From Anthoceros angustus (Eukaryota; Plantae; Anthocerotophyta): DNA of 64,000 nucleotides. The translations under genes were made by a program, and so were the position numbers. Below are positions 3,894 through 49,924 of this stretch, one piece after another. A model generated the notes under the pieces. The model was given only the letters and a program-made list of their open reading frames with translations, was not told where the DNA came from and did no database searches. Position 1 is the first letter of the stretch; every line of letters starts with the position of its first letter. The stretch lies in assembly GCA_010909165.1 (NCBI GenBank), contig MU008205.1, positions 310,001 to 374,000 of the forward strand, written 5' to 3'.

Positions 3894-4971
3894 TCAAAAA
3901 CAAGAGGCATTGCAGGGTAGGGCAGGATACACAGCAGCTGGATTAAGCTGACGCAGTTTTTCCTTGCACTCCTCTAATTCCTTTTCCAGGACATCCAGCT
4001 CGATCTCTTCGAGGTCCTCCTCATCAGCACCAGCCATGGTGCACGCACTTGTTTCTCGAGCGGCAGCCTCCTCCTCGAGCTCATCAGCAGCAGGCCTTAT
4101 GGAACCAACTGCTCGTCGAGCGCCAGCCTCATCGACCTCGCACTCACCACAACCTTGCCGCTGGGGAAGAACTTGTAGCAGATCTGCTGGGTACAGAGGA
4201 CCGTGTCTGCCGTTGGACTCTTGGCTGCGGATGTCATTCTGCTGGGATTGATTCCTTCGGCGGACCCGGCGTCTCTGCTTCGCAGCTGACTTGCTGCACT
4301 CTCCCGTCTCAGCTGCGGGAGCGCTGGTGCCCTCCACGTACGCAACCAAGGCATCCACGTCCCGCTCATCGTTCACACCTTGCATGGCCATCACCCTCTC
4401 CGACAGCCACTCGTTGTAGTCCATGATGGTCTGTGCCGCCTGTGGGTTCTCGAGGGGCAACCAAGCTTCCTCCTCGGTCGCAGGAGCCGGCAGGTTCAAC
4501 TCCTCCCTGATCTCCTGGGGTGAGCACCGCCTCCAAAAATCGTTCCCGGCCTCGGTTGCTTGGTACACGAGCTCCCGGAGGTTAAGAAGCTCAGCCGCAA
4601 CAGCTACCTGGAGTAGTTGGATCCCCTTGACCGATTGGCAGAATCTGCGGACGTTGGCCTGCCGCTCGAGCTCCCTTCTGTTACCTGCGTAGGAGGAGCA
4701 ATACCACATCACCCCGCGGAGTGCAGCCAGGGAAGTCAATCTGGCCGGCAGCTGCGTTGGAGGAAGACTTTGGGCAAGGGGCAGAGTCTCGTGGAAGGGG
4801 CCGAGAGGTCGCAGGACGCCGTCCGCGGCACTCCTTGGCACCGTAAACACGCCTTCTGCCCCAGCTCTCCGGATCCGGATTGGATGCAGTGCAACCTGAC
4901 GAACTGCACCTCAAGGAGTTCCGCCTCCACTACCAGCTCCTTGGCACTCCCCTCTTGGCCCACCAAGCCAT
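3894..4971 (-). CDS. Divergent intronless SKP1-like protein, type II (ASK20/ASK21-like), paralog a, copy A; ATG at 4971 with apparent indels in the 5' part
   Basis: YCSSYAGNRRELERQ...LLQVAVAAELLNLRELVYQATEAGNDFWRRCSPQEIREELNLPAPATEEEAWLPLEN aligns with the SKP1 dimerisation region of ASK21 as recalled (LCELTSAADSLQLKPLVDLTSRALARIIEGKTPEEIREIFHLPDDLTEEEKLEPLKN). Also has the type-II motif DERDVDALVAYVEG (cf. DERSVDDLLSFING), a basic stretch, and an acidic C-terminal helix LEKELEECKEKLR. Confidence 0.8.
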
Positions 4972-5607
4972 TGGCTGCTTAGGCTTTAAGACACACCAAC
5001 CTGATGGAGATAAGCAAACACAATCGAGGCCTTAGCCTCCACCTCCCAAGCAAGATGCCAAGCCCTCGTCTGGACGTCGTTCCCTCGTCTTCGTGCTTCC
5101 CTGTCGATACGAGAGCAGCTTGACGAATGCGGGCCCTTAAAACTCTAACACCACCTTAAGCTTGTTCTAGAATGAAAGAGGATTGCTGGCTATGCAAGGG
5201 CACCCGTGTATCGTGTAGGCTTAGGCTTAAGTTGAGGATGTTTGAGTTCCCCTAAAATTAATCTACTTCACATTATCTCCTTAGCTACTAAGGCTAATAT
5301 TCTATACTCAGACTCAGTGCTTGATAGGGCTATAGTAGGTTATTTTCTTATTTGATCAAGATATATGAGTTCCTCCCAAAAATAATACATAATATGGATT
5401 TGCGAGTATCGAGATCACCAACATAGTTAACATCAGCATAAGCTGTTAATGTTAATTTTTCTATGTCGGGTATATACTTGAACATCAGTCTTATGCATAG
5501 TCCCTTCAAATATGTAACATGTGCTTAATTGATGTTCAATGCTCACGTCGTGGTTCTCCAAGAATTGTGAGCAGGAGCTAACTTCAAAAGCAATATCTGA
5601 TCTAGTA

Positions 5608-6329
5608 TATAATCCACTCCCCTAATTTGGGATTGGTTCGGAGTGCCTTTAGAGGTCCCATTAAGGGAGGTGTCCCGATTAGATTTTTTCCCATTTAAAA
5701 ATAAAAATATAATAAATTCAAAAAATAAAAAATACTCAAAAAAAGGAAAATTCAAATTTTGATTGATAGGTTTCACTAAAAATAATTTTTACCACTTCTC
5801 TACATAGTTGCTTGAAAACTAGCACTCTTTTAAAGCAACATTAAAAAATCTCTACCTATCATAAAGGAAAAAGCTTAGCTTAGGAGTCTTCAATCACACC
5901 TAAAAGTCTATTGTGTTATGAAATAATTGACAATACTCCTTTGCACCCGCCATACTTTGAGATGATGACTAATCAGTGTTTCCGAAAGGCATTAAGCAAC
6001 GCCATAGAGTCTAATTGGTAGTATCTCAAGCATTATAACTTATTCTCGATTGTCATGTGCTTATATTATATTGATAGAATACGAAGTCTATTCGATACCT
6101 ATTGTATACCTATTCGATTCCTTTTTCTTTTCTTTTTTTAAATTTTTTTAGTAAAAAAATAAAAAATCCCATTTAGGGAGGTGAAACTAATATGAATGTA
6201 TGTTTCAAAGGTCCCAATTTAGGGAAAAGTGTCGTTTTTTACACTGTAAACTAAAGGGAGTAGGATCGGAGGTCCCATTTGGAGAGGAATCGCATTTATA
6301 GAGTTCCCATTTCGGGGGAGCTGACTGTA
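5608..6329. mobile_element. Putative degenerate non-autonomous TIR element (MITE-like)
   Basis: AT-rich block. Left end tataatccactcccctaatttggga resembles the reverse complement of the right end (tacagtcagctcccccgaaatggga). Repeated (g)gtcccatt/tcccatt motifs near both ends. No coding capacity. Confidence 0.35.
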
Positions 6330-6339
6330 GTTACCTAAA

Positions 6340-6396
6340 TATATAAGAGTGCCAATAGTATATAAGAGTGCCAATAGTATATAAGAGTGCCAATAG
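6340..6396. repeat. 19-bp tandem repeat tatataagagtgccaatag x3 (also near 6984-7040 and 22436-22492)
   Basis: Direct reading; period 19. Confidence 0.95.
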
Positions 6397-6767
6397 CATG
6401 TCGATATGGAACTGGTGTATTGGGACTCATGTCAGAGGTAAGCTTAACACCATTAGCAAAAGGTGTAGGGGCTAGCTTAGCGTCCTCAAGACCAAACTTA
6501 GCTAAACATTCCTTATTATACTTAGTTTGTACAATACTTAAAGTCTTATCACCACGATTTCTAATGATATTAACCCATAACGATATGTCATCTCTCCTAA
6601 AACAGACATTTCATAAAAAGTCCTTAACCACGCCTTTGTTTCTACTAGAGAGTAGGCGATGATGTAGCCATAAAACATCATCAACGTAAAGTAGGAGATG
6701 AAATATATTTTTACCGGATATCGAATGTAAAACAAGCGTCGACCTTACTTTGCGTAAATCCTGTACC

Positions 6768-6855
6768 GACAAGTTGTACATCAATAGTTAAGTTCCGACA
6801 AGTTGTACATCAATAGTTAAGTTCCGACAAGTTGTACATGAATAGTTAAGTTTCA
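6768..6855. repeat. 29-bp tandem repeat gacaagttgtacatcaatagttaagttcc x3 (also near 7413-7495 and 22860-22945)
   Basis: Direct reading; period 29. Confidence 0.95.
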
Positions 6856-7624
6856 ATTCTTGCCCTGATTGCTCGAGGCCATGTAGGCCTTGAATGAGTC
6901 GGCATACCCAATCCTCTTTGCCTTTAACTTCGTAACCCTCATGTTGTCTCATGTATATTTGTTCTTTCAAATACCTATATAAATATATAAGAGTGCCAAT
7001 AGTATATAAGAGTGCCAATAGTATATAAGAGTGCCAATAGCATGTCGATATGGAACTGGTGTATTGGGACTCATGTCGAGGTAAGCTTAACACCATTAGC
7101 AAAAGGTGTAGGGGCTAGCTTAGCGTCCTCAAGACCAAACTTAGCTAAACATTCCTTATTATACTTAGTTTGTACAATACTTAAAGTCTTATCACCACGA
7201 TTTCTAATGATATTAACCCATAACGCATATGTCATCTCTCCTAAAACAGACATTTCATAAAAAGTCCTTAACCACGCCTTTGTTTCTACTAGGAGAGTAG
7301 GCGATGATGTGGCCATAAAAACATCATCAACGTAAAGTAGGAGATGAAATATATTTTTACCAGATATCAGAATGTAAAAACAAGCGTCGACCTTACTTTG
7401 CGTAAATCCACCGACAAGTTGTACATCAATAGTTAAGTTCCAAGTTGTACATCAATAGTTAAGTTCCGGCAAGTTGTACATGAATAGTTAAGTTTCAATT
7501 CTTGCCTCGATTGCTCGAGGCCATGTAGGCCTTGAATGAGTCATACCCAATCCTCTTGCCTTTAACTTCAGAACCCTCATGTTGTCTCATGTATATTTGT
7601 TCTTTCAAATACCTATATAAATAT

Positions 7625-7835
7625 GCTGTCTTTATATCCGTCGTGTGGAGTTCAAGATCATGTCTTTATATCCATCGTGTGGAGTTCAAGATCATGTCTT
7701 TATATCTATCATTGTGAAGTTCAAGATCATGTCTTTATATCCATCATGTGGAGTTCAAGATCATGTCTTTATATCCATCATATGGAGGTCAAGATCATGT
7801 CTTGATATCCATCATGTGGAGTTCAAGATCATGTT
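7625..7835. repeat. 34-bp minisatellite atcatgtctttatatccatcatgtggagttcaag x about 6 (also 23076-23286)
   Basis: Direct reading; period 34. The reverse complement encodes the copia RT LELHxMDIKT motif. Confidence 0.95.
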
Positions 7836-8299
7836 GGGATGACAAGGTAAATATTATTCCCATAGTGACAAATTTGGCTACAAAGGCTTATGTAGCCCAA
7901 GGTATGTAATCCAAACCGAGAATTTGGGTAAAGACTGGCTACTAGTCGTACCTTATATCTCTCAATAGAACTATTCTTTTTCTTAATCTTAAATACCCAT
8001 TTGCTGGTAATTATCTTCCTTGATTAGGTGGTTTGATCAATTCTCATGTAGAATTATTAACTAAAGAATTATATTCAGAATAATCTATATCTACCTTTCA
8101 TAAGTCTTTTTAGGAGAAGAGAAAACTTGTTTTAAGATAAATGGTTCTTCTAGGTCAAGAGTAGCAATATATACAACTTGTACATAAATAGATAAAGGAG
8201 AGAGATGATCATCCAAATGATCAAGATACAAAACGAGGTTCCTTCCAACCTCAAGGCTAAGAATGGCGGGGCGTGACCGAGGTTGTACCTAGACTTGTA

Positions 8300-9900
8300 G
8301 GAAACTCCATCGCAGACATCGAGCCCACCGACCCACCCACGAGACTGGGCCTCGTAAGACAAAGGCTCTACATTGCATGACAAGAGTCGGTGGCATTCTT
8401 GAGTCCAAGTCGCACACAAAAGGTTATTCAAATGCGCACTCACCGGGGCACCGGGAGGTAGTCAGATTGTCTAGGCGAATCGCGGACGGTGATGCCGCTT
8501 CTTCAACAAGAGGTGCAAACAATGCAGCAATTGAAGGTGACGCAACTCTTTGTGGGACAAGTTGTAGGCATGGATACAAGTTAGGGCCATCTCTTGTGTC
8601 AATGACCCGATTTCACGCACCGGAATGGCAAATGCACAAAAGGCACTACTACTTGCTATGAGATCGATCCAATGCAAACAATTACACCGTGGATCTCAAT
8701 TTGCATTTGCAAAGGAACGGATGACAAATCTCCAGCAGATATGTGTTGTAAATATGTCATCCGTCGATTCACCGCTTCTCACATACTTAATTCAAGAAAT
8801 TGAGTACCTAGCACATGGGCAGCTACAACAATGGCAAGATTCAAGAAATATCTCACCTTCCAACAGTCCCGCCATTCAACTCGTTCCTTTGTCACAAAGA
8901 ATTGTAGACTTGCCAAACATTGTTGCCGACAAACACGTATATTGTATATTGACAAAGTTGGTCTCAAACTTAGTTGGGAAACAAGAGGAATGGTGCGTGG
9001 GTATTTATCGGCATTCACATCCCACTTCCTCATCTTTCCAAGCATCCAAATCAGCAAGCTTCTTCATAATTAACATCCCAGCTGGTTGTTCTCAAGTGTT
9101 GACCTCTACACAAGAGTGAATCGATGGTCGATCGCAAGGCCACCATACCCATCCTTAGAGTCACATTTTATCACTCCTGCTCATCCTATTTCAGCCCGGC
9201 AAAATCCCAACAAACCCCGTGATCCGCACAACAACGGAAAATGAGCATCCTTCCATACCTCAAATTTCATCAAATTTAGCAGCACCGTAAGCTTGACTGA
9301 GGTAGGTCCGAACACTTCATCCCACTCCAACCTAGGTTCAAATGCGATTTCACCTCCTTCTCCTTCGCATCTTCGAACTCTCTACAAGATGCCATCTCCC
9401 AGCCCTTGTTAACCTCACCACGGGTAAGCTCGATCCCGCAGTAAGCTGTGAATATGGACTTTCTCGAAAAGAAATAATTGAGTTCCTAGGAATTGTCCGG
9501 TTTAAGCTATCGTGTCTTTGGTTTCTGGCAACGACGTCTAGCTACCTATTTGTTTGCGAGTTTGGTGGATTGCAGAGCAGTGGCGGAGCTGCAAAGAAAC
9601 ATATTGCCCGGAGAGCAATCTGTTTTGCTGAATTCTATGAGGTGATCAATTGCTGATTTTGCATGAAAAAGAGTACTAGTGTGATTTGGCTCCATTTCAC
9701 GATGTTATACCCTATGGAGGGGGATGGCAATTTCGACTTGCCTTAGCTTCCCTGCTGCCTCGGCCAAGGTCTTCCGGTGTTTGCGAGATCGGCTGTGTCC
9801 CGGAGCACACCATTCCGTTCTGCCTGCTACCGAGGTGCAGAGAGCGCAAATTTTGTTAGGCTGGAGGGATGGGACTGGAGGGACAGCGCAATGAGCAAGC
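8300..9900 (+). mobile_element. Probable degenerate L1-like LINE 3' portion
   Basis: Weak residual motifs in LINE order: YKLGPSL (RT YLG-like), LPNIVADKHVYCILTKLVSNLVGKQEEW (post-RT region), TTSSYLFVCEF (zf-RVT-like) and VIWLH..DVI (W..RN..F-like). No intact ORF. Confidence 0.35.
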
Positions 9901-10149
9901 CCTGGACACACTCCATCCCGAGTTGTAGCTTATTTCCAGGTAAGTGATCAGTGACAGGTGGGCACGCTCTCTAGATCTAAGTCTCGAGCAGTGCTTTGTG
10001 CTATAATATGCTCCTGCATTCTGCTGGAAACGGTCTGCAAGTTTTAATGTGAAATCCAAGAAGATGGAAGTTACCGGCGTCGTCCCCTGAGCCCAGAAAA
10101 GATCAAAACTGCTCACGTTTTACATCACAGGGATCAATATATTGAAGGA

Positions 10150-12130
10150 CAAAGGATTTCTGCGGTATGCATTCTGAGCAGTACTTTGCGATGCTAGGAA
10201 GGCCATAACTGCGGGATGTTAACGGATCAGATTTTCTCAAGGCTAGCAAGGTCGGTGACAAGTAGATCTCAACGAATTTTCCATCTTTTATGCCTGTGTG
10301 AGGCAGAGGCGTATCCCGGGCGCTTTATTACAAACCTAACCGTGTTCTTTGGAGCTGCAATGAAGTTCAAGACTACAAGATTTCTTACGCAAGGATGCAA
10401 CAACTCCATGGTGGAACAAGAGAATTGAACCAATATACCGCAGCAGAAGCAGCCATTTGTGTCTCCCGGCATTTGGGCTTAGGGAAGCATCTGTAGGTGT
10501 AAATCGAGAACAGGCACACCACGATGTGTTTGTCACTGTGGGTTGGTGAAAATGTAAAAGCGGTGCAGCATGCAATTCAAGGCATCGGGCTTGGAAAGGA
10601 AGGTGATTAGGCTTGGAAAGTGTTTGCCGGGCTTGGTGACGATTATATGGTGGCATGGACTTACATGATGGCAGGTATTCCCATGACCAGCAGGGCATGG
10701 GGCCGGAAGCTCTTCATGTGTACAGTACTAGGCAAGAAGAAGGTCCCATTGCTGTACCTCATTTTATGACATTTTTCTGCGTCCTAAAAGCATGTGCACA
10801 TTTGCTAGCTTGTCTCTGCATAGAAAGGCAGCTGCATATGTACACAGATTGTAGAAGAAGACCTTGGTATTCTCTGCGCGCGCGTCCTGCAGTTTGGCAC
10901 TCTCTTGGAAGCAGTGGAGTTAGACAAAACAGTTCCTGCGGCATAAGTGTTGATGTCGACGAGATACGCGCACGACGCCATTGGTCCCACGGTGCTATGC
11001 AAGAAGGTGCGAGCATGTAAGATAGAGGCGAGGAGGCGGGGTGGGGTATGGAAGCAGCGGATCGAGCTAGTGGCAGTCGTGTACAACATATACACTAGAG
11101 AAGACGCCGGAGAGAACCCAAATGTTCATCATGAAAACTTGTGGGCCTTCGCTACCACTAATGAGATATCGGTGAGAACAGATAGGAGCCGGGTAATTAT
11201 CTGCAAAGGCTGGAAGACCTTGTACAACATATCTCCTTGCGATCCCAGGCTGGTGGTGCCATAATCGAGAGCACATAGCAGCCTGTTCTTTGCAATTAAG
11301 ATATAGAAATATAACTAGGGACGGGGCGCCATTGGTCCCCACGGTGCTATGCAAGAAGAAGGCCTGCCTGTACCTGATTCTGTGACATTTGTGTGCCTCC
11401 TGCAGGCATGTACAGCTGTGGGCAACCCCAGCTTTGAGGAAGGCGAGGCAACTTTATGAGAGAGGGTATCCAGCTGGAAGTTTGGTGAAAATGTATGAAA
11501 ATTGTGGCAGCCTCCAGTGGACCACGAGTGTGTTTGATGGACTTGCTCAAAATACGTGTTGACGTGCACGACTGCCATGATAGCAGGGGCATGGTATTTT
11601 CAGCAGTACTCCCGCAGGGAATGGGTCTTGCACTAGTATACAGGGGCAGGGTATTCTCAGCTCGTATTTCCAGCAAGGAATGGGCCAGCGGGAAGCCCTT
11701 TTGTCTCTACAGCAATATGCAAGAAGGTGCAGGCATGTGCACGTGTACATGTTTGGCATGACCTGGATTAGGCTACTCGAAAATGTTTAATGGACTGATC
11801 AAAAGATATGGTGACATGGAATGCGGTGATACAGGCACTTTTCGCAGGTAGGGTGCAGGCCGCCTTCATCTTCACATTGATATGAGAAGAGAAGGTAATC
11901 TGCACTGATTCTGCGACATTTTTGTCTCTCCTGCAGTATGTGCAATCGTGGCCTCCGGCGTTGGAGAAGGGGAAGCATCTGCATCCGCAAATCGAGAACA
12001 GGAACACCGGCTGATGTTTTAGCCGGTTTGGTGGAAATGTACGCCAACCGTGGCGTGGAAGATGCTCAGGCCGTGTTTGACCGACTTGGTCAAAAAGATG
12101 TGGTGCTCTGGTTTCTGATAAAGTTTTAAG
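10150..12130 (+). pseudogene. Degenerate PLS-class PPR pseudogene, copy A
   Basis: Fragments such as MTFFCVLKAC, LVKMYENCGSLQ, GSICIRKSRTGTPADVLAGLVEMYANRGVEDAQAVFDRLGQKDVVLW are typical PPR P/L/S motifs. Many stops and frameshifts. Confidence 0.8.
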
Positions 12131-12269
12131 CTGATATTACCAGCTAGCCATGAATGAACAACATGTCCAAATCATGCAAGGAAACACCTGCTGCACGGGT
12201 GGCTCGGGCTAACCTACCTAGCTAGCTACCTCAAGACAAGAAGGCATTGCAGCGTCCGATAAACACAGA

Positions 12270-13290
12270 TTAAAGATCAAAATGGAGTCTTTTCTCGAAC
12301 TCAGCTACTTCCTCATTCAGAGCAGCCCTCGTCACAGGGTCCAGGCCATTCTCATAGAGGTCGCTCTCCTCACCGCCATCATGTAAGCAATTGCTTGCCT
12401 AACTTCAGCCTCATCCACCTTAAGACCATGTGCTTGCGCGTGAAGAATTTGTAGAACAAATTGGATCCGAGGAACGTCGAAGGAGCTGGGCAGCATCCAT
12501 ATCATCGGCGGATCGAGCCCGTGCGAGATCCGGCAGATGCACCGGACCGGACCCTTGATCGTGGGTGGAATCAGCTTGGCCTTCCGCTTAGCTTGCTTCC
12601 CACGGCGGCCCTGGCTTCCCGACTTGGAGCGGTCAGATGACCTGCTGCACCCAGCGCTGGTGCCCTCGACGTACGCAGCCAAGGCATCCACGTCCCGCTC
12701 ATCCACACCTTGCATGGTCTTCAGTGTTCGCGACAACCAGCTGTTGTAGAGGAGGATCGCGGTGCTCACCGTCAGGTTCGGGAAGGGCAACCACACCTCC
12801 TTCTCGCTGGCAGGCGCCGGCAGGCCCAGCTCTAGCCTCATCTCCTGGGGCGAAGTCGTATCCCTCTCGAAAGCATTCCAGGCCTCGGCTGCTTGGTTTG
12901 AGAGGTCCTTGATCTTGAGCAACTCGGCAGTGATAGCCACTTCGCGGAGCTGCCTCCTCGGATGGTTTGGAGCGAGGTCCGGATGTTCTCCACCGGTCCT
13001 CCTTTCTGTTACGCAAGGAAGCGAATGCGCTACCACCACCTTGACTGCTGCAAGGCTAGCAAACCCGGCCGGCAGGTGCCGAGGAGGAAGTATGTTGGCA
13101 AGTTCCAGAGTGTTGTGGAATGGGCCCAGACGGCGTAGAACGCCCTCCGCCACACTCCTTGGCACCACAAACGTGCATACCTCCTCCTCTCCTTCTTTGG
13201 ACATCCTCAAGTACTGCTGCTCAGCGCCTTCCCGAGCCCCTCCAATACCTCCTTCGCACTCCTCATCTTGGACCTCTCTTTACAAGCCAT
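12270..13290 (-). CDS. Divergent intronless type-II SKP1-like paralog b, copy A (several frameshifts; gene or pseudogene)
   Basis: MACKERSKMRSAKEV start. Then FVVPRSVAEGVLRRLGPFHNTLELA, LREVAITAELLKIKDLSNQAAEAWNAFERDTTSPQEMRLELGLPAPASEKEVWLP and DERDVDALAAYVEG. The shifted-frame C-terminus LDPVTRAALNEEVAEFEKRLHFDL* parallels ASK21 IDPALKELLDREVEDFARRL as recalled. Confidence 0.75.
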
Positions 13291-13623
13291 GGTCACGCCT
13301 TAAGCAAACGGACGCAAGGCGGACAGGAATCGCCGGAGCGCGACACCGAGATTGTCGGAAACGACACCACAAGTTGGGAGGATGGGAAGATCTTTTAAAC
13401 TCCCACTCCATAAATATATGAACCTCTAGGGAGACCTCCCTCCCGCGACTATTTATTGAGGACTTTGACCTAAGCCTCTTTCACAATGTTTTTTTACCGT
13501 TATTTTTATTTTTTTTACTTCTACGTATGTTATACAAACATAGGTCTCGTTGCTTACAAAGAAGACCCTAGGTCGGTAATGGCTTGGACCCGGCCGAGTC
13601 CCCACCCCAGCACACGAACATAC

Positions 13624-14515
13624 CATGCACTCCGAAATCCTTCCCGCTGATGATAAGTCGAGCGTACACAATGGCATGCGTTGCTGACTTGCCAAGCCCT
13701 CCTGGCCACCACTGCCCACCAGACCAAAGAAGCAACCGTTAACCCACCTCTGGATTGGCCTAACCACTGACACCCCAGGCAAGCACAAAAAGCAAATCCC
13801 GACCTTGTAAGCTGTAAAGGTGGGAGTGTGCAACACGAACTCATCCGTGGACAAATCGAAGGTGGCAGTCGTCTCCAGGCCCTGCACATTGGAGCCATGC
13901 CCCAGCTCTGTCTGGGCATAACAGCCTATAATTGCCATCTTGTAGGCAAGCGGGATCCACTTGCGCTGCTGCTCCTCCGTGGCCTGGCCCTTGATGGCTG
14001 GAATGAACATGCCCTGCGCGGCCAGGACGAGAATGAGCGACAGCAGCCCACCATGGTGGGTGGGTGGGTGCTGAGGAGCAGCCTTTTCAATTCTTACCCA
14101 ATGGAGATCCGTGTAAGCCGGCTGATCCAATTGCGAGCGCAGCTTGAATGACTCCTCCTCTGCAACAAGACGGGCAAGCCCAAGAAATTCTCAGCCCAAT
14201 ACGAGCCAATCCAAGCTCGAAGCCAAGCCAAGCCTTGCCTTGCTTGGTGCTGGTGGGTGGTCTTGGGTATTATCACCCACCTGAGAGCTGCTTCTCCAGA
14301 ATGATGGTCCATACATGCTTGGCCTTGCGCAGCGTGTCATCATAGAGGGCCTTGCGGTCCAGCGAGACCCGGGCCGACTTGTCGAGGACGGGATCGGCTG
14401 CCACCAAATCCGCCATGCGCTGGTCCAGCCGCAGGGCCTCCTCCCCGCCGGCCAGCAGCACCTTCATGGCGTGCACATCGAAGCGCGCGTTGCGCCGCTC
14501 CGCCTCCAGCGCCAT
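13624..14515 (-). pseudogene. ACX1: 5' fragment of peroxisomal acyl-CoA oxidase ACX1: exons 14515-14281, 14159-14098, 14013-13804, 13711-13624; rest of gene absent
   Basis: The spliced product reads MALEAERRNARFDVHAMK...QPAYTDLHW|[19 protein letters not shown]...[26 protein letters not shown]...AYK|[26 protein letters not shown]. All introns are GT-AG and the 198 codons are open. No further ACX exons appear downstream. Confidence 0.9.
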
Positions 14516-14757
14516 GGCCTTCTAACGCTGCTGCTGCTGCTGTTTGTGGGACAAGGAGCCGGAGAGGAGGAGCAAGGAAGGCGAATTTATGTGAGGCCCG
14601 GACACACCCTTTTGTGGGCGATTGTGAGAATGTGGGTTTTGGCAGGTAGCCAAGTGGCATCTGTGATCGGTTTCCGGAACCACCAACCAAACGCAAAGCA
14701 GAGAAGCAGGAAGTGGAAGGGCAGGAGACCTGGTCGGCAGTGGGCAAGGCAGGGGCT
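14516..14757. promoter_or_regulatory. Short divergent intergenic region (242 bp ATG-to-ATG) between ACX1 and OR23; probable bidirectional promoter
   Basis: Head-to-head ATGs at 14515 (-) and 14758 (+). Confidence 0.55.
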
Positions 14758-22425: not shown

Positions 22426-22426
22426 G

Positions 22427-35380: not shown

Positions 35381-35459
35381 GCCTCCCGAGTTCCTCCGGC
35401 TCACGTTCGTCGCTCGAGCCTGGGCGAACCCAGTCGCTCTTCCTGCACACACCACCACA

Positions 35460-40130: not shown

Positions 40131-40364
40131 GACTCAACTTCTAAATTACTTTCCTGGCGTACTTATCTGTTTTGAGTGGGGTCCGGACTTATCCGATACC
40201 CGGTCGCGATCCGTAGCTCGTCGGTAGTGCAGTCATTACCCTCCAGTCCGATACTCGAACCGTCCAGTGTCCGTGCTTATTCCTCCTTTTCCGCCTTATT
40301 TTACCCGGACCTCACGAAAAAACAAAACCCAACTTATTTCCTAGCCCAAGGGAAGTCCGCAGCC

Positions 40365-41755
40365 CACAAGGCTGCGTCGGGGACATTGCGTCTGCAGGCG
40401 CGGGCGCACCCACGAAGGGAAGGAGCTCGAACTTCCATCGGTGACATCATGTGGTCGCTGGGAGGAGGTAGGAACCACAGGCCCGCCAGAAATTCGCAGT
40501 GTCGCTGATTCGGCGCGAGACTCGAAGGCTGCTGTGGAGGATGGCGCCCAAGGTCACAACGGTGAGATTGTGCTTGCCAATGGCCAAATATGGATCATTG
40601 GAAAGTCCGAAGGAATTGGTGAAGGAGGCTGGGCTTCATGGAGAAGCGCTGAATTATGTGAACCTAGGATGTGCAGTGCGCCCGCCATCGAAGGCAAGCA
40701 ATCGGGCGAAGGGATTAGGCGAAGCCCGATTGGGATCCGAATTGGTTAGAAGGGTGTATGGGCGCAGCAAGGAGGAGGCAGTGGTTCGGTGATGGAACCT
40801 TCCGGAAGGAACAGCAAGCGGCGGCGGCGGCGGGGCCACAAGGCTGCGTCCGGGGACATTGCGTCTGCAGGCGCGGGCGCACCCACGAAGGGAAGGAGCT
40901 CCGAACTTCCACATCGGTGACATCATGATGCTGAGCTAGAGGAGGTAGGAACCACAGGCCCGCCAGAAATTCGCAGCAGGTATTCGGGGCGCGAGACTCG
41001 AAGACCGTGGAGGGATGGCGCCCAAGGTCACGGTGAGATTGTGCTGCCCAATGGCCAAATATGGATCATTGGAAAGTCCGAGCTGGGAATTGGTGAAGGA
41101 GCCTGGGCTTCATGGAGAAGCGCTGAATTATGTGAACCTAGGATCAGCAGTGCGCCCGCCATCGAAGGCAAGCAATCGGCGAAGGGATTAGGCGAAGCCC
41201 GATTGGGATCCGAATTGGTTAGAAGGGTGTATGGGCGCAAGGAGGAGGCAGTGGTTCGGTGATGGAACCTTCCGGAAGGAACAGCAAGCGGCGGCGGCGG
41301 CGGGGCCACAAGGCTGCGTCCGGGGACATTGCGTCTGCAGGCGCGGGCGCACCCACGAAGGGAAGGAGCTCCGAACTTCCACATCGGTGACATCATGATG
41401 CTGAGCTAGAGGAGGTAGGAACCACAGGCCCGCCAGAAATTCGCAGCAGGTATTCGGGGCGCGAGACTCGAAGACCGTGGAGGGATGGCGCCCAAGGTCA
41501 CGAGATTGTGCTGCCCAATGGCCAAATATGGATCATTGGAAAGTCCGAGCTGGGGAATTGGTGAAGGAGCTGGGGCTGGGCTTCATGGAGAAGCGCTGGA
41601 ATTATGTGAACCTAGGATCAGCAGAGTGCGCCGCCATCCGAAGGCAAGCAATCGGGCGAAGGGATTAGAGCGAAGCCCCGTGATTGGGATCCGAATCGTT
41701 AAGGGTGTATGGGCGCAGGAAGGAGGAGGCAGTGGTTCGGTGATGGAACCTTCCT
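40365..41755. repeat. About 472-bp unit repeated three times in tandem
   Basis: cacaaggctgcgtc..ggacattgcgtctgcagg occurs at about 40365, 40837 and 41308. Confidence 0.9.
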
Positions 41756-43000
41756 AAGAGGAGCAGCAAAGAAGAAGCAGCCCGCCTCGTTAAGGCGGGC
41801 GTAATCAAGAACACGGCTAATCGCGACTTGGCAACAACACAGTTGATGGGTCTGGCCAGATGGCTTCTGTGTTTCCTACAGCACAAGAAGCAGGATTATT
41901 TGTCTGACCACTTGCTGCTGTTCCTCCATGAAGTTGTCAAGGGGGCGAAAATCGATTGGGGACGGATTCTCTTCGACAAATTGTGTGAAGAGAGGTTGAA
42001 CCTGATTGCTCCTACCCCTCGGCCCTCTCTAATTTCACCTTTCCTGGTCCATCTTTGCGCTACGCGCCCGAGGTAGAAATTGTGGCCTCCCTTCACATGT
42101 GGAAGCCGGTTAGGGAGGTGAAGTGGAAGGCGGAGGAGCCCAAGGAGGAAATCGAGGTGGAATCGGGGCGGCCGGAGTGTGGCGGCAGGCTACGAGAGAA
42201 AGAAATTTCCACCAGCAAGAAGAGGAAGACCGGGGGTGGCAAACGGGCCTCAGCGAAAAAGGTGAAGGTGGACGCGCGCGTCACCAGGTCGAAGGCGGGC
42301 GCCGCGCTGCAGAAAGTAAAGGCCAATCGGCAGGTTGAGGTGGCGGAAGAAGAGGCGCGGTCGGAGGAAGACCAGTGTGCTGACCTGGATGCAGATGGCG
42401 AACCAACCCCGGAGAATTAGGGCTGACCTCGGAAGCGGACCTCTCCTCAGCATGGGAGGAGATTTTCAAAGGGACTCCACTGGCAACAGAAGTGGATGCC
42501 GAATTGGTGAGGGTGCGCACCTTGCTGGGAAGGAAAGTGCTCGACAGGGGGATGGCGTCTGGCGCGGGGCCGCCACAACAGGTGGATTTGCGGGGAGCGG
42601 CCACGCCGATGATCCGGGCCCAAGCGGATTTGTTAGATCAAGCGGCCTTGGCTCTCACATGGCTCAGTGTGCAAGGCGGCGGAGGAAGTAGTAAAGGCCG
42701 GGTTTGGCGAGGCCAAGCGCAAGCAGCGGAGGAAGACAAGCGAGACCTAGAGGAAAAAGGGCCAAGATTCGGAGGATTTGTGCAGGCTCGGGAGAAGTTA
42801 CGAGGCCATGAGGCGCTCATGGCTCAAATTAAGGATGCCCATGAGACGAACCAGGAGATGCAGGGAGAGCTGTTGCGAGCCCATGAGCAAGAGGCGGCCT
42901 CTGTGGAAGGAAAGGCTGGCGGAGCAGTATAAGCAGGCGGGATGAGGCACGTGGCCGAGCCAGAAAGGATAAGGGAAAGGGGAAGCGAGGTAGCAGGACC
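40540..43000 (+). mobile_element. Ty3/gypsy (Athila/Tat-like) accessory ('env-like'/plant transposon protein) ORF, frameshifted
   Basis: KQDYLSDHLLLFLHEVVKGAKIDWGRILFDKLCEERLNLIAPTPRPSLISPFLVHLC fits the pattern of putative plant transposon protein domains. It is followed by a K/R-rich NLS-like stretch and a coiled coil, and lies just upstream of an LTR. Confidence 0.55.
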
Positions 43001-43265
43001 ACGACTGGGGTAGTGGAAGGAACTACCGAAGGAAAGGATGCAACATGATGGCGAAACACCTCGGGGTTCTTGAGCAGGGCACAGTCGTGGAGTCCACCAC
43101 CGCGGTAGCGGAAGCTGCTACCGGCATTGGCGAGCCCAACTCTGAAGCGGCCATGAGCGGAGCGACAGGATGCGACGCGGCACCTCGCGAGGACATGGGC
43201 CAAGCAACCAGGTGTAGCCCACGGGAGGAGGGGTAAGCACCTCAGCTACAGCAGGAGGTCCTATT

Positions 43266-43733
43266 ATGTTGCGGCACATGGATGAGGAAACTTATGTTCC
43301 TGGTCTATATGTGAATGGGGAACGCGTGCTTAACTTCACTGTCCATGTGCGTGTGGAAATAGGAGGGATCAGGGCCTACCTACTGCAAGTGAGGACTCGA
43401 AGTGCATACTTCTACCACTGCGCCCGAGTGTGGGGGTTGGCCCCCTATTATGCGGAGGCGACTTTGGAGGAGTTAAGTGAGGAGGAGGTCCAGGCTTGGG
43501 TGGACGAGGAACCGGTAATAATCCTCAGCAATAGGCGGCAAGCGGAAGACGCGGAAGCTCCAGGGCAGGGTACACCTCAAATTAGGACGTCCAGTAGTGA
43601 CAGTGATGTGGAAGTATTGTGGAAAACCTGTCAGATCAGCGGCGTGGAAGGAGGGCTCGTGGCGGCAGCGATGGAGGACGAAGTGCCAGGCGGCCAAGTC
43701 GAGGGAGGGCGCGCAGATAGCGTAGACAGATAG
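43266..43733 (+). CDS. Uninterrupted 155-aa ORF of unknown function in the retroelement 3' region
   Basis: ATG-initiated; mixed hydrophobic/aromatic N-half and acidic C-half; no recognised family. Confidence 0.35.
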   Translation: MLRHMDEETYVPGLYVNGERVLNFTVHVRVEIGGIRAYLLQVRTRSAYFYHCARVWGLAPYYAEATLEELSEEEVQAWVDEEPVIILSNRRQAEDAEAPGQGTPQIRTSSSDSDVEVLWKTCQISGVEGGLVAAAMEDEVPGGQVEGGRADSVDR

Positions 43734-43739
43734 GTGATA

Positions 43740-45316
43740 GCATCCTAAGGATAGATTTGGTTAGGATGCTGCACTGGACCTAAGATCGCTCCGAATTGTG
43801 GGTGCGTCCCTTCATGATGGCCATCTTGGGACCTAAAAATCTGGGGCATGGCATCCCATCCGATGTATAAGAGGGGCGAATTATGCCCCTCCTGGCAGAT
43901 AATTTCTGGTTGAGATCCCCACGCTGCCTGTGGCTGGTTGGAGACGTCCGATTGAGGTAGGGTGTGCGAGACGCTCCTAGGGGTGGTCGAGCTTGCTCCA
44001 GAGGCAGGCGGAGGGGTGAGTGAGCTCCTGACGAGGAGGGGAAATCGAGGGATTGGCGCGGGGCGGGTCTGAGCTTGCAACGCCTGTGTGGCCGAGAATT
44101 CTTCCTCCCCTCACCCTTCCTTCTGCTGGCTGTGTTCCAAAATTAAGAGTGTATGTGGTGTGTGTGAATGAAAGCCTGAGGGCGTGTCGAAAGAGGGAGA
44201 GAAGTGGAAGAAGTGAATCAAGGAGGAGAAGAAAGGGTGGCTGAGCACTGTACGCGACGCGAGGTGTAAGGCAGTGTGGTGAAGTTGGGGAGGTGAACTA
44301 ACTAAGCGACTAACAGTGGAAATTGCGCAGATCAGAGAAGATCCCAGAACGGTGCTGTTCGTGAAGGTGAGTACAAGTGGAAATATCATTCCTTCCGAAT
44401 TGTGTGGCAAGTGTGTGTGTGTGTGTGAAGCGATTGAGAGGGATCTAGACGTGGGCCCCTAGGAGTCGATGTGTGTGAGTATGGAGTGGGGTGCATAATA
44501 GAACGACCATGAGCATTGGTAGCCGCGTATCAGGTCCGGCGCGCGGAGATGAGTCGCTAGGGTTTGGTGTGGGACCCACCTCGGTGGGCGTAGCAACTAC
44601 CAGCTGGTGAGAGCCACCGGTAGTAACTCGGAGAAAGGTGGAATAAGCTTTGTGGTCGTGGAACCGGATGGTAGTTAGATAAGTTGGGGAGGTGAACTAA
44701 CTAAGCGACTAACGGTGGAAATTGCGAGATCGAGAAGATCCCAGCGGTCTCGTGAAGGTGAGTACAAGTGGAAATATCATTCCTTCCAGAATTGTGTGAA
44801 GGCGGCCCTGTGTGTGTGTGTGTGTGAAGCGATTGAGAGGGATCTGCGGAACGTGGGCCCCTAGGAGTCGATGTGTGTGTGAGTATGGAGTGTGGGGTGC
44901 ATAATAGAACCTGACCTGTGAGCATTGGTAGCCGCCCGTAACAGGGTCCCGCGGCGCCGTGCGCCAGAGATGAGTCGCTAGGGTTTGGTGTGGGACCCAC
45001 CTCAGTAGGCGTAGCAACTACCCGGCAGTGGTGAGCCACCGCGGTAGTAACTCGGGAACGGAGGTCGTGGAATAAGCTTTGTGGTCGTGGAACCAGATCT
45101 GTGGTAGTTAGATAAGTTGGGAGGTAGTAGTAGACGAACAGATAGACGAGAGGGGGAATAGCAGGAAAAGTCCTAACTTAGGTGAAGGTCAGAAACAATA
45201 GAAGTTAGCGTTTCTTGGCACAAATCATTCCCTTAGGAACGAATCCCAAGACTACAACGACATTGAGGGTAAATGTGGACCTCACGGTGTCCCCGGACAC
45301 CAGGTTACACTCCACA
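43740..45316 (+). mobile_element. Ty3/gypsy LTR (5' boundary approximate) with about 400-bp internal duplication (44281-44681 / 44682-45110)
   Basis: Ends in ...ctccaCA at 45316, three nt before a canonical PBS. TATA-like tataagagggg at 43866. Confidence 0.6.
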
Positions 45317-45319
45317 TTT

Positions 45320-45337
45320 TGGCGCCGTTGCCGGGGA
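45320..45337 (+). promoter_or_regulatory. Primer-binding site complementary to the 3' end of tRNA-Asp (TGGCGCCGTTGCCGGGGA)
   Basis: Exact 18-mer typical of Athila-type plant gypsy elements, located between the LTR end and gag. Confidence 0.9.
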
Positions 45338-45414
45338 ATGAAATCGCTGTCAAGGACGTAGGAAGGACTAACCCTAGCTTACGTAGAGTCTAGCATTACT
45401 AGATTGATAGATGG

Positions 45415-46080
45415 ATGCCTCGGGTGAAGACGAGCGACTCTGGGTCTGACTTTGGGGAAACGCCTTTGGTAAAGCAACAACGCCAAGCAGCAGAAAGGTT
45501 GCAGAGAGTTACGAGGAGGGCGCAGGTCACAACTACTGGACAAGGGAGAGGAGCGGGGACTCGACTCGGAATCAGGGATCGGACCTTATCCGACACAGAT
45601 TCCCAACTATCGGCTACGGAAACGGTAGAAGGGGCCAGGTACCCCGATTCCACCTTGCCCTTTGATCTCTGTTCCAGGTTGCCTAGATCAGCTACGGTCC
45701 AGTCGAACTTCGTGGATGTGGAGGTCAGTCCAGACGTAGTGGCCATGTCAACTACTGCAGTCGTTGAAAGTGCTACCACGGTAGTTATGGCCAGTACTCC
45801 GGTGCTTGTTACTACTAAGCAATCTTACCCGTTGTATGGAGAAAAGAAGGGCCATGAGGATCCTGACAAGTTCGTCGAGCGTTTTGAGCAGCTAACGCTT
45901 GCCAATCAGGAGGATGCGCAACGTGCCCAGCTGTTTTATGGGGTCTTACGCGGAGCGGCGGCCAAGTGGTACAAGTGGGAGTACATAGCTTCTTCCACAC
46001 CCCCAGCCACCTTTGGGGCCTTGAAGAGAGCTTTTTGCGAAAGGTTTAGAGGAGTCGGTGTCGAAGGATATGTCCTGAAT
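45415..46080 (+). mobile_element. Ty3/gypsy gag N-terminal part, truncated
   Basis: EDPDKFVERFEQL...AQLFYGVLRGAAAKWY...TFGALKRAFCERF is a Retrotrans_gag-like signature. The sequence changes abruptly to a different repeat at about 46080. Confidence 0.85.
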
Positions 46081-46081
46081 T

Positions 46082-47157: not shown

Positions 47158-48758
47158 TTCAAGTCAGTCAATAGAGCTTGCACTTCCACTGTAATTTCCT
47201 GTTAGCTTCAGCCGTAATTGTTTAAGCTCATCTCGTTATGTGGGCTTTGTTCATGTAGTTGAATGTTTGTGAAGGAGTGTTGGCGAAGTTGCTGTCAAAT
47301 GGAGGCCGCAGGTGACAAACTAGTCTACTACCGATTGTAGAATGCATGGTGTAGTAGGCTTTGCCAGTATAGCGTTAGTGGAGTTTTTTACAACAAGCCT
47401 CTGTAGATTTTACAACAAACTTGTTTCATTGCAACGCATTAAGTTTACAACGGACCCCTATCTCTACTCCCGAAACTTTACAACGAGGGCCTTTTACAAC
47501 GGGCTTCGTTGTAAATGCCTAGCTACTTTTAAACGAACCCTGTATAACATGGTTCATTTACAACAAGGTCCATTGTAAAAGTGCACACTTATTACAACAG
47601 GGCTCGTGCGAAAGGTACGCACGATTACGACGGCCATTCAGTTAGGTTAATCATGGTTAAGTAACCCCAACTAGTTTGTGGTGATTGGAATCCAGTTACT
47701 TAATCCCAGTTAATAAACTGCGGTCAATTTACCATAGTACTTAACTCTAGTATATTAACCATGGTTATTGAAGTTGTAAAATGCGTTGTAAGTGTATCGT
47801 AGTAATGTCCGCTGTAAAGGGGTTCCGTTGTAAAGTTTAACCAGTGTACGGAGCACCAGTCAAGCCATACACCGGATGAAATGGACAATACCGTATTCAA
47901 TACATGATATAGCCCTCGGATATGCGTATATACTTCTACTACGGATATTACTAAGATGTGTTTAATACGAGGATTTTTACTACAGACTTAGTAAAGCCGT
48001 TGTAATGCCCGTTGTAATTTAAAAGGCCCGTTTTCCTAGTAGTGAATTTCCATAACTCTGTAGAAAGTGCTGGCTAACGCTGTTTATAGGATGGCTACGT
48101 GCGCAAGACTAGCGGCTTCTTCGGCACCGGTGATAGGTAGGCCCTTTATTATCCCTGATCACGATATCATTGGTGCAGTAGGTAGTTACGGGAAAGGCAT
48201 TGGAGGGGACTAGGACTTCCCCTTTTACTATTAGCCCTTTTTGGTAGTTCCTCCTCGGACTTCAGGGTAAATGGGATTTCTTATCTCGTCTATTAATAAC
48301 GTCTACTCTACTATGTTGGAATTTGATCAATTTGAAGATTTTATACATATTTTAAATTATACATCCAAATCCTGCACTAAAATTTCTACATAAATCCCAA
48401 AAATTACATTAGAATTTGATTAGAGTAACCTTGTAAGCCAAGATGTAACCTCATATTCCACTACATGATGTTTATAGCTGACATAATGGTACCCCATTTA
48501 AGTACTGATCCGTAGGATCGCTTAAGTGTGGATGTCACTCCTTGAACGGCACCACTCTGCTCGCGTTCTTGCTAGGTTTCTATATCATGGTGTAAGAGTT
48601 GTAAGATGCTTATTTTCGTTCTTCAAGCCTCCCATTGTCTTCGTGCTTTGCGTGCTCACATTCGTGGCGCTCCAAAGAACCCTCCGCATCTTCTTGCGCG
48701 TGGTGGCCAGGGCCCTTGATTGTGTTCGCTATTGTTAAGGTGCATGTCAGGTGTGAGC

Positions 48759-49924
48759 ATGGCTGGTAAGGAGGAGTCCAAGAGGGAGAGTGCAAAGGAA
48801 GTAGTGGAGGAGGGACGCGCTGAGCTGCGGTTCTTGAGGTTCCAATCAACTAGACCCGGAGAGCTGGTGGAGGAGTGCCTGATTTCAGTGCCCAAGAGTG
48901 CAGCAGAGGGCATGCTGCAGTTACTTGGGCCGTTCCAAGAGACGTCGCACCTTGCCGAAATTGACGCTCCTCGGCAGCTGCCTGTAGCCGGGATTTCTAC
49001 TGTGGCTGCACTCCTGGTGGTGGAAAAGTATTGCTGGATCTACGCAGGAAACAGCATAATGGAACAGCGGCAGGCCAAGATCCGGGCACTGCTCCAACCG
49101 GTTCAAGGAGGCGTGTTCCTCGAGTTGGCTAAAGCTTGTCATCAGCTTAAACTCCGGGAGCTGTATGACGAAGTAGCCAAGGCCTGGGATGATTGGAAGT
49201 TGCGCTGCTCACCCCAGGAGATGAGGGAGCTGTTGAAGCTGCCGGCTCCTGCCACCGCGGAGGATGCGTGGCTGCCTCTGCCAGACTCACAGGCGACGAA
49301 CGGGCCCATCTGCAACTACAACGATTGGTTGTGGGACAGGGTGAAGGCCATGGCAGGTGGGGAAGATGAGCGGGACGTGGATGCCTTGGTTGGGTACATG
49401 AAGGGCACCAGCACTGCTTCCACCGGAAAGGGTGAGTGCAGCAAGTCAGCTCCTAACTCCAAGCAGCGACGCCGGGTCCGCCGCCGGAATCAAGCGCCTC
49501 AGCGGAATGTCAACCGTGGCCAAGGGTCCGGATCTTCACCCGCATCCGCTGCCGGGTCCTTCTCGGAGCCCAATCCGTCAGACGATCACGTGGATGCCGG
49601 CTCCAGCTCCTCCAGCCTCGTTCCTCTGGAACCAACTCTGCTACAAGCTCTTCGCCAGCGGCAAGCTTGCGGTGAGTGCGAGCTCGATGAGGCTGTTTAT
49701 AGCAATTGGTTTCATAAGGGCTGCTGTTGATGAGCTCGAGGAGCTAGGAGGCTGCCGTTCGAGAGACAAGTGCGTGCAGGATGGCTGGTGCTGATGAGGA
49801 CTTCGACAAGGTCCAGGCTGCTCTAGAAAAGGAAGTAGCGGGGTGGGAGAAAAACTGCGTCTTTACTCCAGCTCCTGTGTATCCTGTCCTAGCCTGCAAT
49901 GCCTTCTTGTCTTTGAGCAGCTAG
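48759..49924 (+). CDS. Divergent intronless type-II SKP1-like paralog c (apparent frameshifts near the 3' end)
   Basis: MAGKEESKRESAKEV start; ISVPKSAAEGMLQLLGPFQET; YCWIYAGN; FLELAKACHQLKLRELYDEVAKAWDDWKLRCSPQEMRELLKLPAPATAEDAWLPL; DERDVDALVGYMKG; shifted-frame AGADEDFDKVQAALEKEV. Confidence 0.8.

Follow-up and report, generated by a model that had tools for sequence, protein, structure and literature searches.

Damaged, strongly diverged type-II SKP1-like copies in a tandem cluster of Anthoceros angustus, probably in birth-and-death turnover

The window analysed here, a stretch of 64,000 nt of Anthoceros angustus contig MU008205.1, contains exactly five related loci when searched by tblastn with the a1, b1, and c ORFs as queries, and these are the same five loci of three types that a first-pass annotation had listed, with all of its shared motifs (VPRS and the others) found as well (Table 1). 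The types a, b, and c are three diverged paralogues, all lying within 46 kb, with protein identities of ~49% for a/b, 48% for a/c, and 40% for b/c, while a1 and a2 share 97% of their amino acids, and b2 is 89% identical to b1 in nucleotides with many indels. In the DNA alignment of a1, b1, and c, the longest invariant run by far is a 25-nt block encoding DERDVDAL, which is the same in all five copies except for one C/T. Similarity between types also reaches ~100 nt upstream of the ATG and 150–300 nt downstream of the stop. As the annotation had claimed, no intron is needed, given that a1 reads in a single frame from the VPRS motif to the stop.

Table 1. Positions of the SKP1-like copies and associated features in the window.
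Feature	Position	Strand	Description
Copy a1	3894-4971	-	Conserved ATG-GCT start to ancestral stop
Open frame of a1	3897-4910	-	338 codons; begins upstream of the VPRS motif and ends at the ancestral stop
Copy a2	19990-21065	-	Conserved ATG-GCT start to ancestral stop; segmental duplicate of a1
Copy b1	12270-13290	-	Conserved ATG-GCT start to ancestral stop
Core ORF of b1	12335-13210	-	
Copy b2	29415-30359	-	Conserved ATG-GCT start to ancestral stop; counterpart of b1 in duplication unit 2
Copy c	48759-49924	+	Conserved ATG-GCT start to ancestral stop
DERDVDAL-encoding 25-nt block	4346-4370, 20440-20464, 12679-12703, 29793-29817	-	Copies a1, a2, b1, b2
DERDVDAL-encoding 25-nt block	49365-49389	+	Copy c
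Duplication unit 1	1-13602		F-box/Kelch gene, a1, b1, acyl-CoA oxidase fragment
Duplication unit 2	14713-30657		Contains a2 and b2
F-box/Kelch ORF	46-1176	+	Head of unit 1; Kelch motifs by Pfam

The count of five copies stands, but not as five independent events, since a2 and b2 are tandem duplicates of a1 and b1 that came from a segmental duplication of 14–16 kb. Substitutions between the two units climb along their length (1.1%, 1.8%, 3.3%, and 8.4% in four successive blocks) and are accompanied by many small indels, with 0.28–0.65 indel events per substitution over the entire duplication and, in its distal block, 87.8% identity with 460 gap positions. Over 1.6 kb, a1 and a2 differ by 11 indel events and 19 counted substitutions, of which 11 form one cluster at 4856–4869 that is in fact two compensating indels, leaving ~8 true substitutions. 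The ORF at the head of unit 1 has an N-terminus that is F-box-like by eye only (LPGLPDDLA...), and its copy in unit 2 (~14758–16008) is split over three frames; as a neighbour of the SKP1-like copies, it might be a candidate partner at most.

Type-II SKP1 is an old, slow-evolving, and low-copy branch of poorly known function, with a range that extends from green algae to flowering plants. The kinship of the copies with this branch is beyond the reach of Pfam: in the profile check that the annotation had proposed, none rose above the curated cut-off of Skp1 (PF01466) or Skp1_POZ (PF03931), the best match being Skp1 at E=0.39, where 19 residues of a2 scored 11 bits and the cut-off is 22.3, with no Skp1_POZ match in any copy. 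A word-index search of 5.8 billion proteins also gave no match. By means of a profile of the family itself, 31 of 33 matches in the PDB were SKP1 chains, all colinear (E 0.036–0.4 or weaker), and 18 matches at E<=1e-3 were obtained among 1.84 billion representative proteins, 17 of which (E 5e-12 to 8e-4) exceed the Pfam cut-off for Skp1; these 17 are long proteins named SKP1-like 20/21 by NCBI or their source, including those of Marchantia, Spirogloea, and chlorophytes, and no type-I SKP1 reached E<=1e-3 in that search. In the reverse direction, a profile built from 16 type-II proteins and run on the window scored 61.5 bits on a1 (aligned over positions 80–334 of 399), 53 on a2, 30 on c, and 20 on the b1 core, besides 13 bits on an out-of-frame C-terminal piece of b1, and nothing else in the window was matched. 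When the family profile was split, the core alone gave 18–37 bits per stretch on type II and the tail alone 3–15 bits, compared with ~16 bits when the unsplit profile is run on type-I SKP1 chains of the PDB. Judged by these profile scores, the copies appear nearer to type-II than to type-I SKP1.

The best reciprocal matches are thus type-II proteins (Arabidopsis ASK20/ASK21, the angiosperm "SKP1-like protein 20/21", and Marchantia MARPO_0006s0066, P0010), in agreement with the SKP1 homology of the long, ASK20/21-like form that the annotation had claimed, and the motifs that it had named for this form (DERxVDxL and DP..L..EV..F..RL) are indeed present in the retrieved SKP1-like 20/21 proteins. 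Colinearity with type-II SKP1 extends over ~250 residues and includes three separate tail motifs. It runs from the last POZ helices through the region equivalent to the F-box-binding helices of SKP1 into the tail, where DER-x-VD-x-L, the basic run, and the acidic C-terminal helix follow one another in the same order as in SKP1-like 20/21. In detail, the copies share with type II an N-terminal and core order of LP strand, Y-C helix, E-L-x-S-A-A-type helix, SP(E/Q)E(I/M)R, and LP..TEEE..P, followed in the tail by DER(S/D)VD.L..(F/Y)(I/V).G, a basic run, an acidic stretch, and the DP..L..EV..F..RL-type helix. The DER(S/D)VD.L..(F/Y)(I/V).G hallmark and its basic run are present in a1, a2, b1, b2, and c. 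Only in a1 does the acidic C-terminal helix share the frame of the core; in b1 and c it is recognisable but out of frame.

The distance from canonical type II is nevertheless large: the copies are ~20% identical to it, on a branch of ~6 substitutions per site, whereas canonical proteins from chlorophytes to angiosperms lie within ~1.5. Their N-terminal beta-hairpin and first helix are barely alignable, an 8-residue insertion follows the first helix, a K/R/E-rich segment of ~20 residues that precedes the DER motif has been lost, and the type-II LPDDLTEEEKLEPL is replaced by LPAPATEEEAWLPL. The remodelling of the POZ half proposed earlier is supported by an N-terminus far more diverged than the helical half, a type-II profile whose alignment begins only at position 80, and a low-confidence N-terminus in AlphaFold2. 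In that prediction, the helical core (pLDDT ~90) superposes on SKP1 residues 40–130 with Z 7–9 and rmsd 2.1–3.0, while the N-terminal hairpin has pLDDT 45–73 and the N-terminal sheet is poorly modelled. An unbiased structure search, not based on Foldseek, placed SKP1 (Z 5.9–7.9) below THA8 helical-repeat proteins (9.1–9.5), at Z values that common helical arrangements also attain, and BTB domains (KLHL26, gigaxonin, KCTD9) were also among the matches (Z 5.8–7.0). Language-model features led to Skp1/Elongin C clusters. Elongin C and the BTB-POZ domains are distant structural kin, without a sequence-profile match and unlike the copies, which have SKP1-specific C-terminal helices and the type-II tail.

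The word "genes" in the annotation is unconfirmed, because in none of the five spans does a single intact ORF connect the conserved ATG with the ancestral stop, and each copy has at least one frame-breaking lesion. The open frame of a1 takes in the core and the DERDVDAL motif together with the basic run and the acidic helix of the C-terminus, but two frameshifts between the conserved ATG (4960–4971) and the core put this ATG out of frame. Copy a2 is split over three frames by private 1-nt indels, mostly in homopolymers (e.g., near 20825, 20079, and 20056) and including 1-nt deletions in such runs, and at one 5' position it retains the frame lost in a1. In b1, an 11-nt insertion cuts the conserved ATG (13278–13290) off from the core frame, although an internal ATG is still there, and several frameshifts in the tail leave the C-terminal motif (12273–12398) out of frame with the core; b2 is broken into short ORFs by numerous indels and is a pseudogene, unless the assembly is noisy there. 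Copy c has its conserved ATG at 48759, a second in-frame ATG at 48744, and an intact N-terminus and SKP1-like core in an ORF that runs to 49730, but the ancestral frame of its tail is lost twice near 49690–49760, leaving the C-terminal motif out of frame. The region 48303–50500 around c is matched by DNA contigs of a public sequencing run (X1) that cover both tail frameshifts, the only exceptions being short breaks between contigs and a single variant of 1 nt at 49084, and since c is a unique copy matched base for base by these contigs, its tail lesions are real. A further run, which we guess to be RNA, gave no contig on c.

In the core, dN/dS between types is 0.59–0.83 at dS 0.45–0.62. In neutral simulations with drift of 0.1–0.3 substitutions per site per lineage, a stop-free ORF survived in <=8% of cases per copy, and in <=2% from 0.2 substitutions per site upward, so that ORFs of ~300 codons are too long to have outlasted neutral drift, and selection probably held the reading frames open over most of the a/b/c divergence, with amino-acid change apparently nearly unconstrained (dN/dS 0.6–0.8). 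Given a lesion in each copy, the cluster seems to be in birth-and-death turnover, with most or all of its copies in the window dying or dead. Probably, then, the copies are a lineage-specific and very fast-evolving offshoot of type-II (ASK20/21-like) SKP1 that undergoes birth and death. What had been put forward as a candidate undescribed system is a real family, new in detail, that looks like ordinary gene birth-and-death rather than a new system.

Several other explanations were weighed against this one. That the SKP1 resemblance is due to chance or convergence among unrelated orphan ORFs or repeat-borne sequence would agree with the absence of a Pfam match, the empty word-index search, and the middling structure matches, yet it is extremely improbable in view of reciprocal profile searches that are significant and exclusive to type-II SKP1, a ~250-residue colinearity with three separate tail motifs, and the lack of any transposon termini found. 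The annotation had proposed instead that a retroposed type-II SKP1 seeded the cluster; in a fuller form of this reading, a processed-mRNA retrocopy of a multi-intron gene was the founder, with its descendants now functional and specialised as SCF adaptors or decoys. The coding regions without introns speak for it, together with the several introns of angiosperm type-II genes (PMC6463862, PMC3576659), the retention of ORFs as a sign of past function, and the F-box/Kelch gene within the same duplicated unit. Type II is even defined by more than one intron (Kong et al. 2007, as quoted in PMC3576659 and PMC6463862), a definition from which the continuous ORFs of the copies depart. The type-II gene of Marchantia polymorpha (MARPO_0006s0066), however, is also a single uninterrupted ORF of 437 codons in the genome, so the statement that type II is normally multi-intron holds for angiosperms and not for Marchantia, an intronless coding sequence is nothing special among bryophytes, and retroposition is not needed. 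Given that the Marchantia protein has all the type-II sequence features, the intron criterion does not work beyond angiosperms and is no basis for deciding membership here. Moreover, no run of six or more A was present within 800 nt downstream of any copy as a poly(A) remnant, no flanking repeats were found around the copies in the window, the visible amplification is tandem and segmental, and the flank similarity between types fits DNA-level duplication equally well; the adaptor or decoy part has against it the lesion in each copy, the dN/dS of 0.6–0.8, and the lack of a contig on c in the presumed RNA run. We therefore regard retroposed, working adaptors as quite unlikely.

A more direct challenge to decay is that the genes are intact and working, three to five good ones in truth, with the frameshifts, at least those of a and b, being assembly errors and unit 2 perhaps wholly or partly a false or poorly polished duplication. 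The 11 indels against ~8 true substitutions between a1 and a2, mostly single homopolymer bases, and the indel-to-substitution ratio across the duplication are typical of unpolished long-read consensus in near-identical repeats, and the identity and gaps of the distal block resemble raw long-read error. Also, the lesions of a1 and a2 are at different sites, and wherever the two differ, at the three 5' lesions as well as at additional 1-nt indels, one copy is intact, for which reason the a-type gene may be intact in reality. Against this, at least the tail frameshifts of c are real, the b1 lesions include the 11-nt insertion and multi-base indels, and homopolymer slippage is the commonest natural indel too, so that we hold error as the general explanation to be unlikely, if well worth bearing in mind. 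The high dN/dS, on the other hand, could reflect positive selection on a working family and not decay. There is a slim chance that both apply and the family is alive, with a and b frameshifts as assembly noise, near-neutral dN/dS as diversifying selection, and its members as cullin-blind decoys or private adaptors co-evolving with particular F-box proteins, e.g., that of the co-duplicated Kelch F-box gene; if true, this would be a lineage-specific control layer for SCF ligases that might act, for example, in immunity or self-recognition.

Under the preferred reading of a type-II offshoot in turnover, copy c is the best candidate for a translated product. If still made, this product would have an ATG, a complete core, and a truncated tail, and most likely would be a non-canonical SKP1-like protein gripping F-box proteins via its retained helical half, while its remodelled POZ half might bind cullin weakly or not at all, making it an adaptor variant or a decoy.

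To our knowledge, the explosive SKP1 expansions known so far are of type I. Like the intronless type-Ib genes (Arabidopsis ASK5-19, rice OSKs), the copies are amplified locally in tandem, show rapid birth-and-death, and are weakly constrained and often pseudogenised, but type-Ib expansions came from type-I ASK1-like genes by retroposition, and Pfam still recognises the Skp1 domain of ~160 aa in their proteins, which lack the long tail, whereas the copies described here came from the long type-II form. According to PMC6463862, 64% of intronless ASK genes are under neutral change, and Arabidopsis species have just 2–4 type-II genes. The copies here are several, local, and damaged. The practical weight of the finding is modest, since the copies are damaged, are without orthologues in public data, and show no expression signal on c in the presumed RNA run. 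Still, a type-II-derived tandem family beyond the reach of Pfam means that the type-II branch can also enter rapid birth-and-death, and the intronless Marchantia gene corrects the intron-based definition of the subfamily. The cluster is also a natural variant series, in which the POZ half and the helices matching the F-box-binding surface of SKP1 were remodelled and the tail motifs kept, and which suggests that the still unexplained DER-x-VD-x-L block is the part of type-II SKP1 under the tightest constraint.

Long open frames are present at all five SKP1-like sites, as seen in the ORF listing and its translation, and tblastn with a1, b1 and c as queries returned exactly these five loci in the window and no others. 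In each copy the span opens at a conserved ATG-GCT and closes with the ancestral stop. The motifs listed by the first-pass annotation are present in the copies, and its observation of five copies is real. The three diverged paralogue types (a1/a2, b1/b2 and c) share 40–50% protein identity with each other, while a1 and a2 are 97% identical. The five copies did not each arise independently: a tandem segmental duplication lies in the window (1-13602 vs 14713-30657, here units 1 and 2), each unit holding an F-box/Kelch ORF, one a copy, one b copy and an acyl-CoA oxidase gene fragment. Given that the F-box/Kelch ORF heads each unit, the F-box gene and the SKP1-like genes were duplicated together. 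The acyl-CoA oxidase fragment of the table probably represents a single exon, from a gene lying between the two units.

Substitutions between the units climb along their length (1.1%, 1.8%, 3.3% and 8.4%), and indel events per substitution are unusually high (0.28–0.65), many of them being single-base changes in homopolymer runs. This gradient and this indel excess could be the product of gene conversion at one end, of uneven assembly polishing, or of a false duplication. At 16534-19084, a segment of about 1.4 kb is present in an additional local tandem copy in unit 2 (17366/18785, 16534/17945), whereas it is single in unit 1. By far the longest invariant run of the DNA alignment is a 25-nt block of the codons of DERDVDAL, the same in all five copies bar one C/T. 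Its silent sites are invariant too, though the paralogues are otherwise 30–45% diverged in DNA; this invariance may stem from codon bias, from gene conversion over short tracts, or from a signal at the nucleotide level, e.g., a small-RNA target.

Coordinates of the SKP1-like copies and other features (window positions unless another record is named)
Feature	Position	Strand	Remarks
F-box/Kelch ORF	46-1176	+	head of unit 1; Kelch_1, Kelch_6 (Pfam); N-terminus F-box-like by eye
a1	3894-4971	-	unit 1
b1	12270-13290	-	unit 1
Acyl-CoA oxidase gene fragment	13456-14190	-	end of Acyl-CoA_ox_N domain; directly upstream of b1
F-box/Kelch copy	about 14758-16008	+	head of unit 2; split over three frames
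a2	19990-21065	-	unit 2
Short PPR-repeat-like ORF	28661-29101	+	Pfam PPR_2/PPR, weak, both under curated cut-offs
b2	29415-30359	-	unit 2
GC-rich (56-64%), strongly strand-skewed block	31000-46000		many long overlapping ORFs without Pfam match
470-bp tandem repeat	40364-41769		3 copies; in GC-rich block
399-bp repeat	44282-45125		in GC-rich block
c	48759-49924	+	
1-nt deletion in GGG run	49084		c core; in two X1 (public DNA run) contigs, depth 10.9 of 36.2; main contigs break there
25-nt invariant block	49365-49389	+	in c; four homologous sites in other copies
Short PPR-repeat-like ORF	51590-52039	-	without Pfam match
Copia-type LTR retrotransposon	54535-63785	-	Retrotran_gag_2 gag, integrase core, SH3-like domain, RVT_2, in pieces
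Liverwort type-II SKP1 gene, intronless coding sequence	L001 2001-3314		Marchantia polymorpha AP019868.1

Among the other features, the GC-rich block is probably repeat or satellite DNA, and the two short PPR-like ORFs are likely degenerate PPR gene fragments. The Copia-type element shows internal direct repeats (58441/59964 and 59713/60688).

The kinship of the cluster to type-II SKP1, the long ASK20/21-like form, is well supported by profile searches in both directions, thus upholding the first-pass assignment even though Pfam found nothing above cut-off in the five ORFs. Searching the PDB with the c sequence alone gave a chance nanobody match only, and no match came from word-index searches in which c and the family alignment were each compared with 5.8 billion proteins. 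When the family profile was run against PDB sequences, 31 of the 33 matches were SKP1 chains, from human, yeast, Arabidopsis and other species; these were all colinear, and family positions 56-140 corresponded to SKP1 49-135 (E 0.036–0.4, a few weaker). An exhaustive family-profile search of 1.84 billion representatives returned 18 matches at E<=1e-3; in every one of the 17 non-spurious ones Pfam Skp1 was above its cut-off, and these were long proteins named SKP1-like 20 or 21 by their sources, taking in Marchantia, Spirogloea and chlorophyte homologues, with the match covering family positions 43-220 and extending beyond the Skp1 domain into the tail. In the reverse direction, the window's 1350 ORF segments were all scanned with a profile from 16 of these type-II proteins, which scored a1 at 61.5 bits (over positions 80-334 of the 399 in the profile), a2 at 53, c at 30 and b1 at 20, together with the out-of-frame C-terminal piece of b1 (13 bits), and no other segment scored. 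Both core and tail contributed to the score, and the elements of the alignments, among them the DER(S/D)VD.L motif, basic run and C-terminal acidic helix, come in the type-II order; the type-II motifs named in the first-pass annotation were indeed found in the retrieved SKP1-like 20/21 sequences. Language-model neighbours were the Skp1 and Elongin C clusters, which we take as a lead only. The remaining match of the 18, the ENA protein P0001 (6790 aa, E 9e-35), was rejected as a relative: it consists of 17 identical repeats of 344 aa, and its score is the sum of their separate matches, each limited to profile positions 171-214 and worth 9.8 bits. In every repeat, a basic run comes after the stretch E-D-V-D-x-L-V-x-Y-I-E-G, an arrangement resembling the tail motif of type-II SKP1; seen in an unrelated giant protein, this may hint that the motif is a portable short module.

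The homology case is made by these reciprocal profile searches, with the fold evidence being compatible but not decisive. With the family plus type-II rows as input, AlphaFold2 modelled the helical core confidently (pLDDT about 90) and the N-terminal hairpin and first helix at low confidence. The best PDB matches by Foldseek were ASK1/SKP1, weak (E 0.026–0.14), and a second-look aligner placed model residues 75-155 onto SKP1 40-130 (Z 7–9, rmsd 2.1–3.0), while a Foldseek-independent search ranked helical THA8 proteins at the top (Z 9.1–9.5), then SKP1 (Z 5.9–7.9) and BTB domains (Z 5.1–7.0). In a tree of type-II proteins with no type-I outgroup, which alone does not test type II vs type I nor fix the family's attachment among type-II proteins, types a, b and c group as a single clade whose branch is very long (about 6 substitutions per site), whereas canonical type II lies within about 1.5 across chlorophytes to angiosperms. 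No relatives closer than canonical type II were found in the 1.84 billion representatives, nor any relatives in metagenome contigs searched with the 25-nt invariant block and the family alignment.

In angiosperms, the definition of type II was based on its multiple introns, and the intronless type-I SKP1 genes have been attributed to retroposition (PMC3576659, PMC6463862). The first-pass annotation proposed that a retroposed type-II gene seeded the cluster. This proposal is weakened by P0010, a Marchantia polymorpha type-II protein of 437 aa with all tail motifs, whose coding sequence is a single unbroken ORF in the chromosome record; an intronless coding sequence is therefore no mark of retroposition in bryophytes, and the Marchantia gene also conflicts with the intron-based definition used for angiosperms. 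Also against retroposition, there is no poly(A) remnant within 800 nt downstream of any copy and there are no flanking repeats around any copy, and the similarity between types continues past the coding span, for roughly 100 nt before the ATG and 150–300 nt after the stop. Transposon capture was rejected, terminal inverted repeats being absent around every copy. The visible amplification of the family is tandem, and the retroposition proposal is not supported.

Protein change between the types is almost as fast as change at silent sites, with a dN/dS of 0.59–0.83 in the core (dS 0.45–0.62) and up to 1.1 in the C-terminal half (a1/c). Under simulated neutral drift of 0.1–0.3 substitutions per site per lineage, the share of runs in which an ORF of 290–330 codons stayed stop-free was no more than 8% per copy, and no more than 2% once drift reached 0.2 substitutions per site; such rare survival means that the frames were protected for most of the divergence. 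Nevertheless, all five copies now depart from the inferred full-length frame, which speaks against present function: a1 has two frameshifts between ATG and core, a2 additional 1-nt deletions, b1 an insertion of 11 nt after its ATG as well as a scrambled tail, b2 a frame broken throughout, and c has lost its tail frame twice, so that its predicted product would stop short of the C-terminal helix. The c lesions are real, since X1 contigs reproduce c over 48303-50500 with no differences save short contig breaks and one 1-nt variant, and one contig of 1143 nt spans both tail frameshifts. That 1-nt difference, at 49084, may come from another, nearly identical c-type gene copy elsewhere, from a variant, or from read error. 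The a1/a2 lesions are less secure and resemble the product of poor polishing of near-identical repeats: where the two differ by indels, one copy of the pair retains the intact frame, and most differences are homopolymer-length changes. No contig for c was found in X2, the only candidate RNA run (its RNA status being guessed), which is not proof of silence.

The residues common with type II (L-P, Y-C, E-L..A-A, the (E/Q)E(I/M)R turn, L-P, T-E-E-E, P and N, with D-R-V-L-G in the tail) are core hydrophobics and helix-capping motifs, which suggests that the scaffold was kept while surface positions were replaced. In SKP1 structures, helices H5-H7 grip the F-box and the POZ half grips CUL1, and Arabidopsis ASK20 reportedly binds F-box proteins and not CUL1. 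BiFC signals of ASK20A/B with some F-box proteins have been published, showing no more than that (PMC3499479). Most plausibly, the c product, if made, would be an F-box-binding, cullin-poor SKP1 variant. A complex prediction of c residues 20-235 with the F-box region (70 residues) of the Kelch protein nearby scored 0.24, under the mark and run without controls, and is evidence neither way.

In summary, what had been put forward as a candidate undescribed system, possibly of specialised SCF adaptors or decoys, reduces to an offshoot of the known SKP1 family that is lineage-specific, evolves fast and is largely decaying, and is of moderate-to-low interest unless the a- or c-type genes prove intact and expressed.
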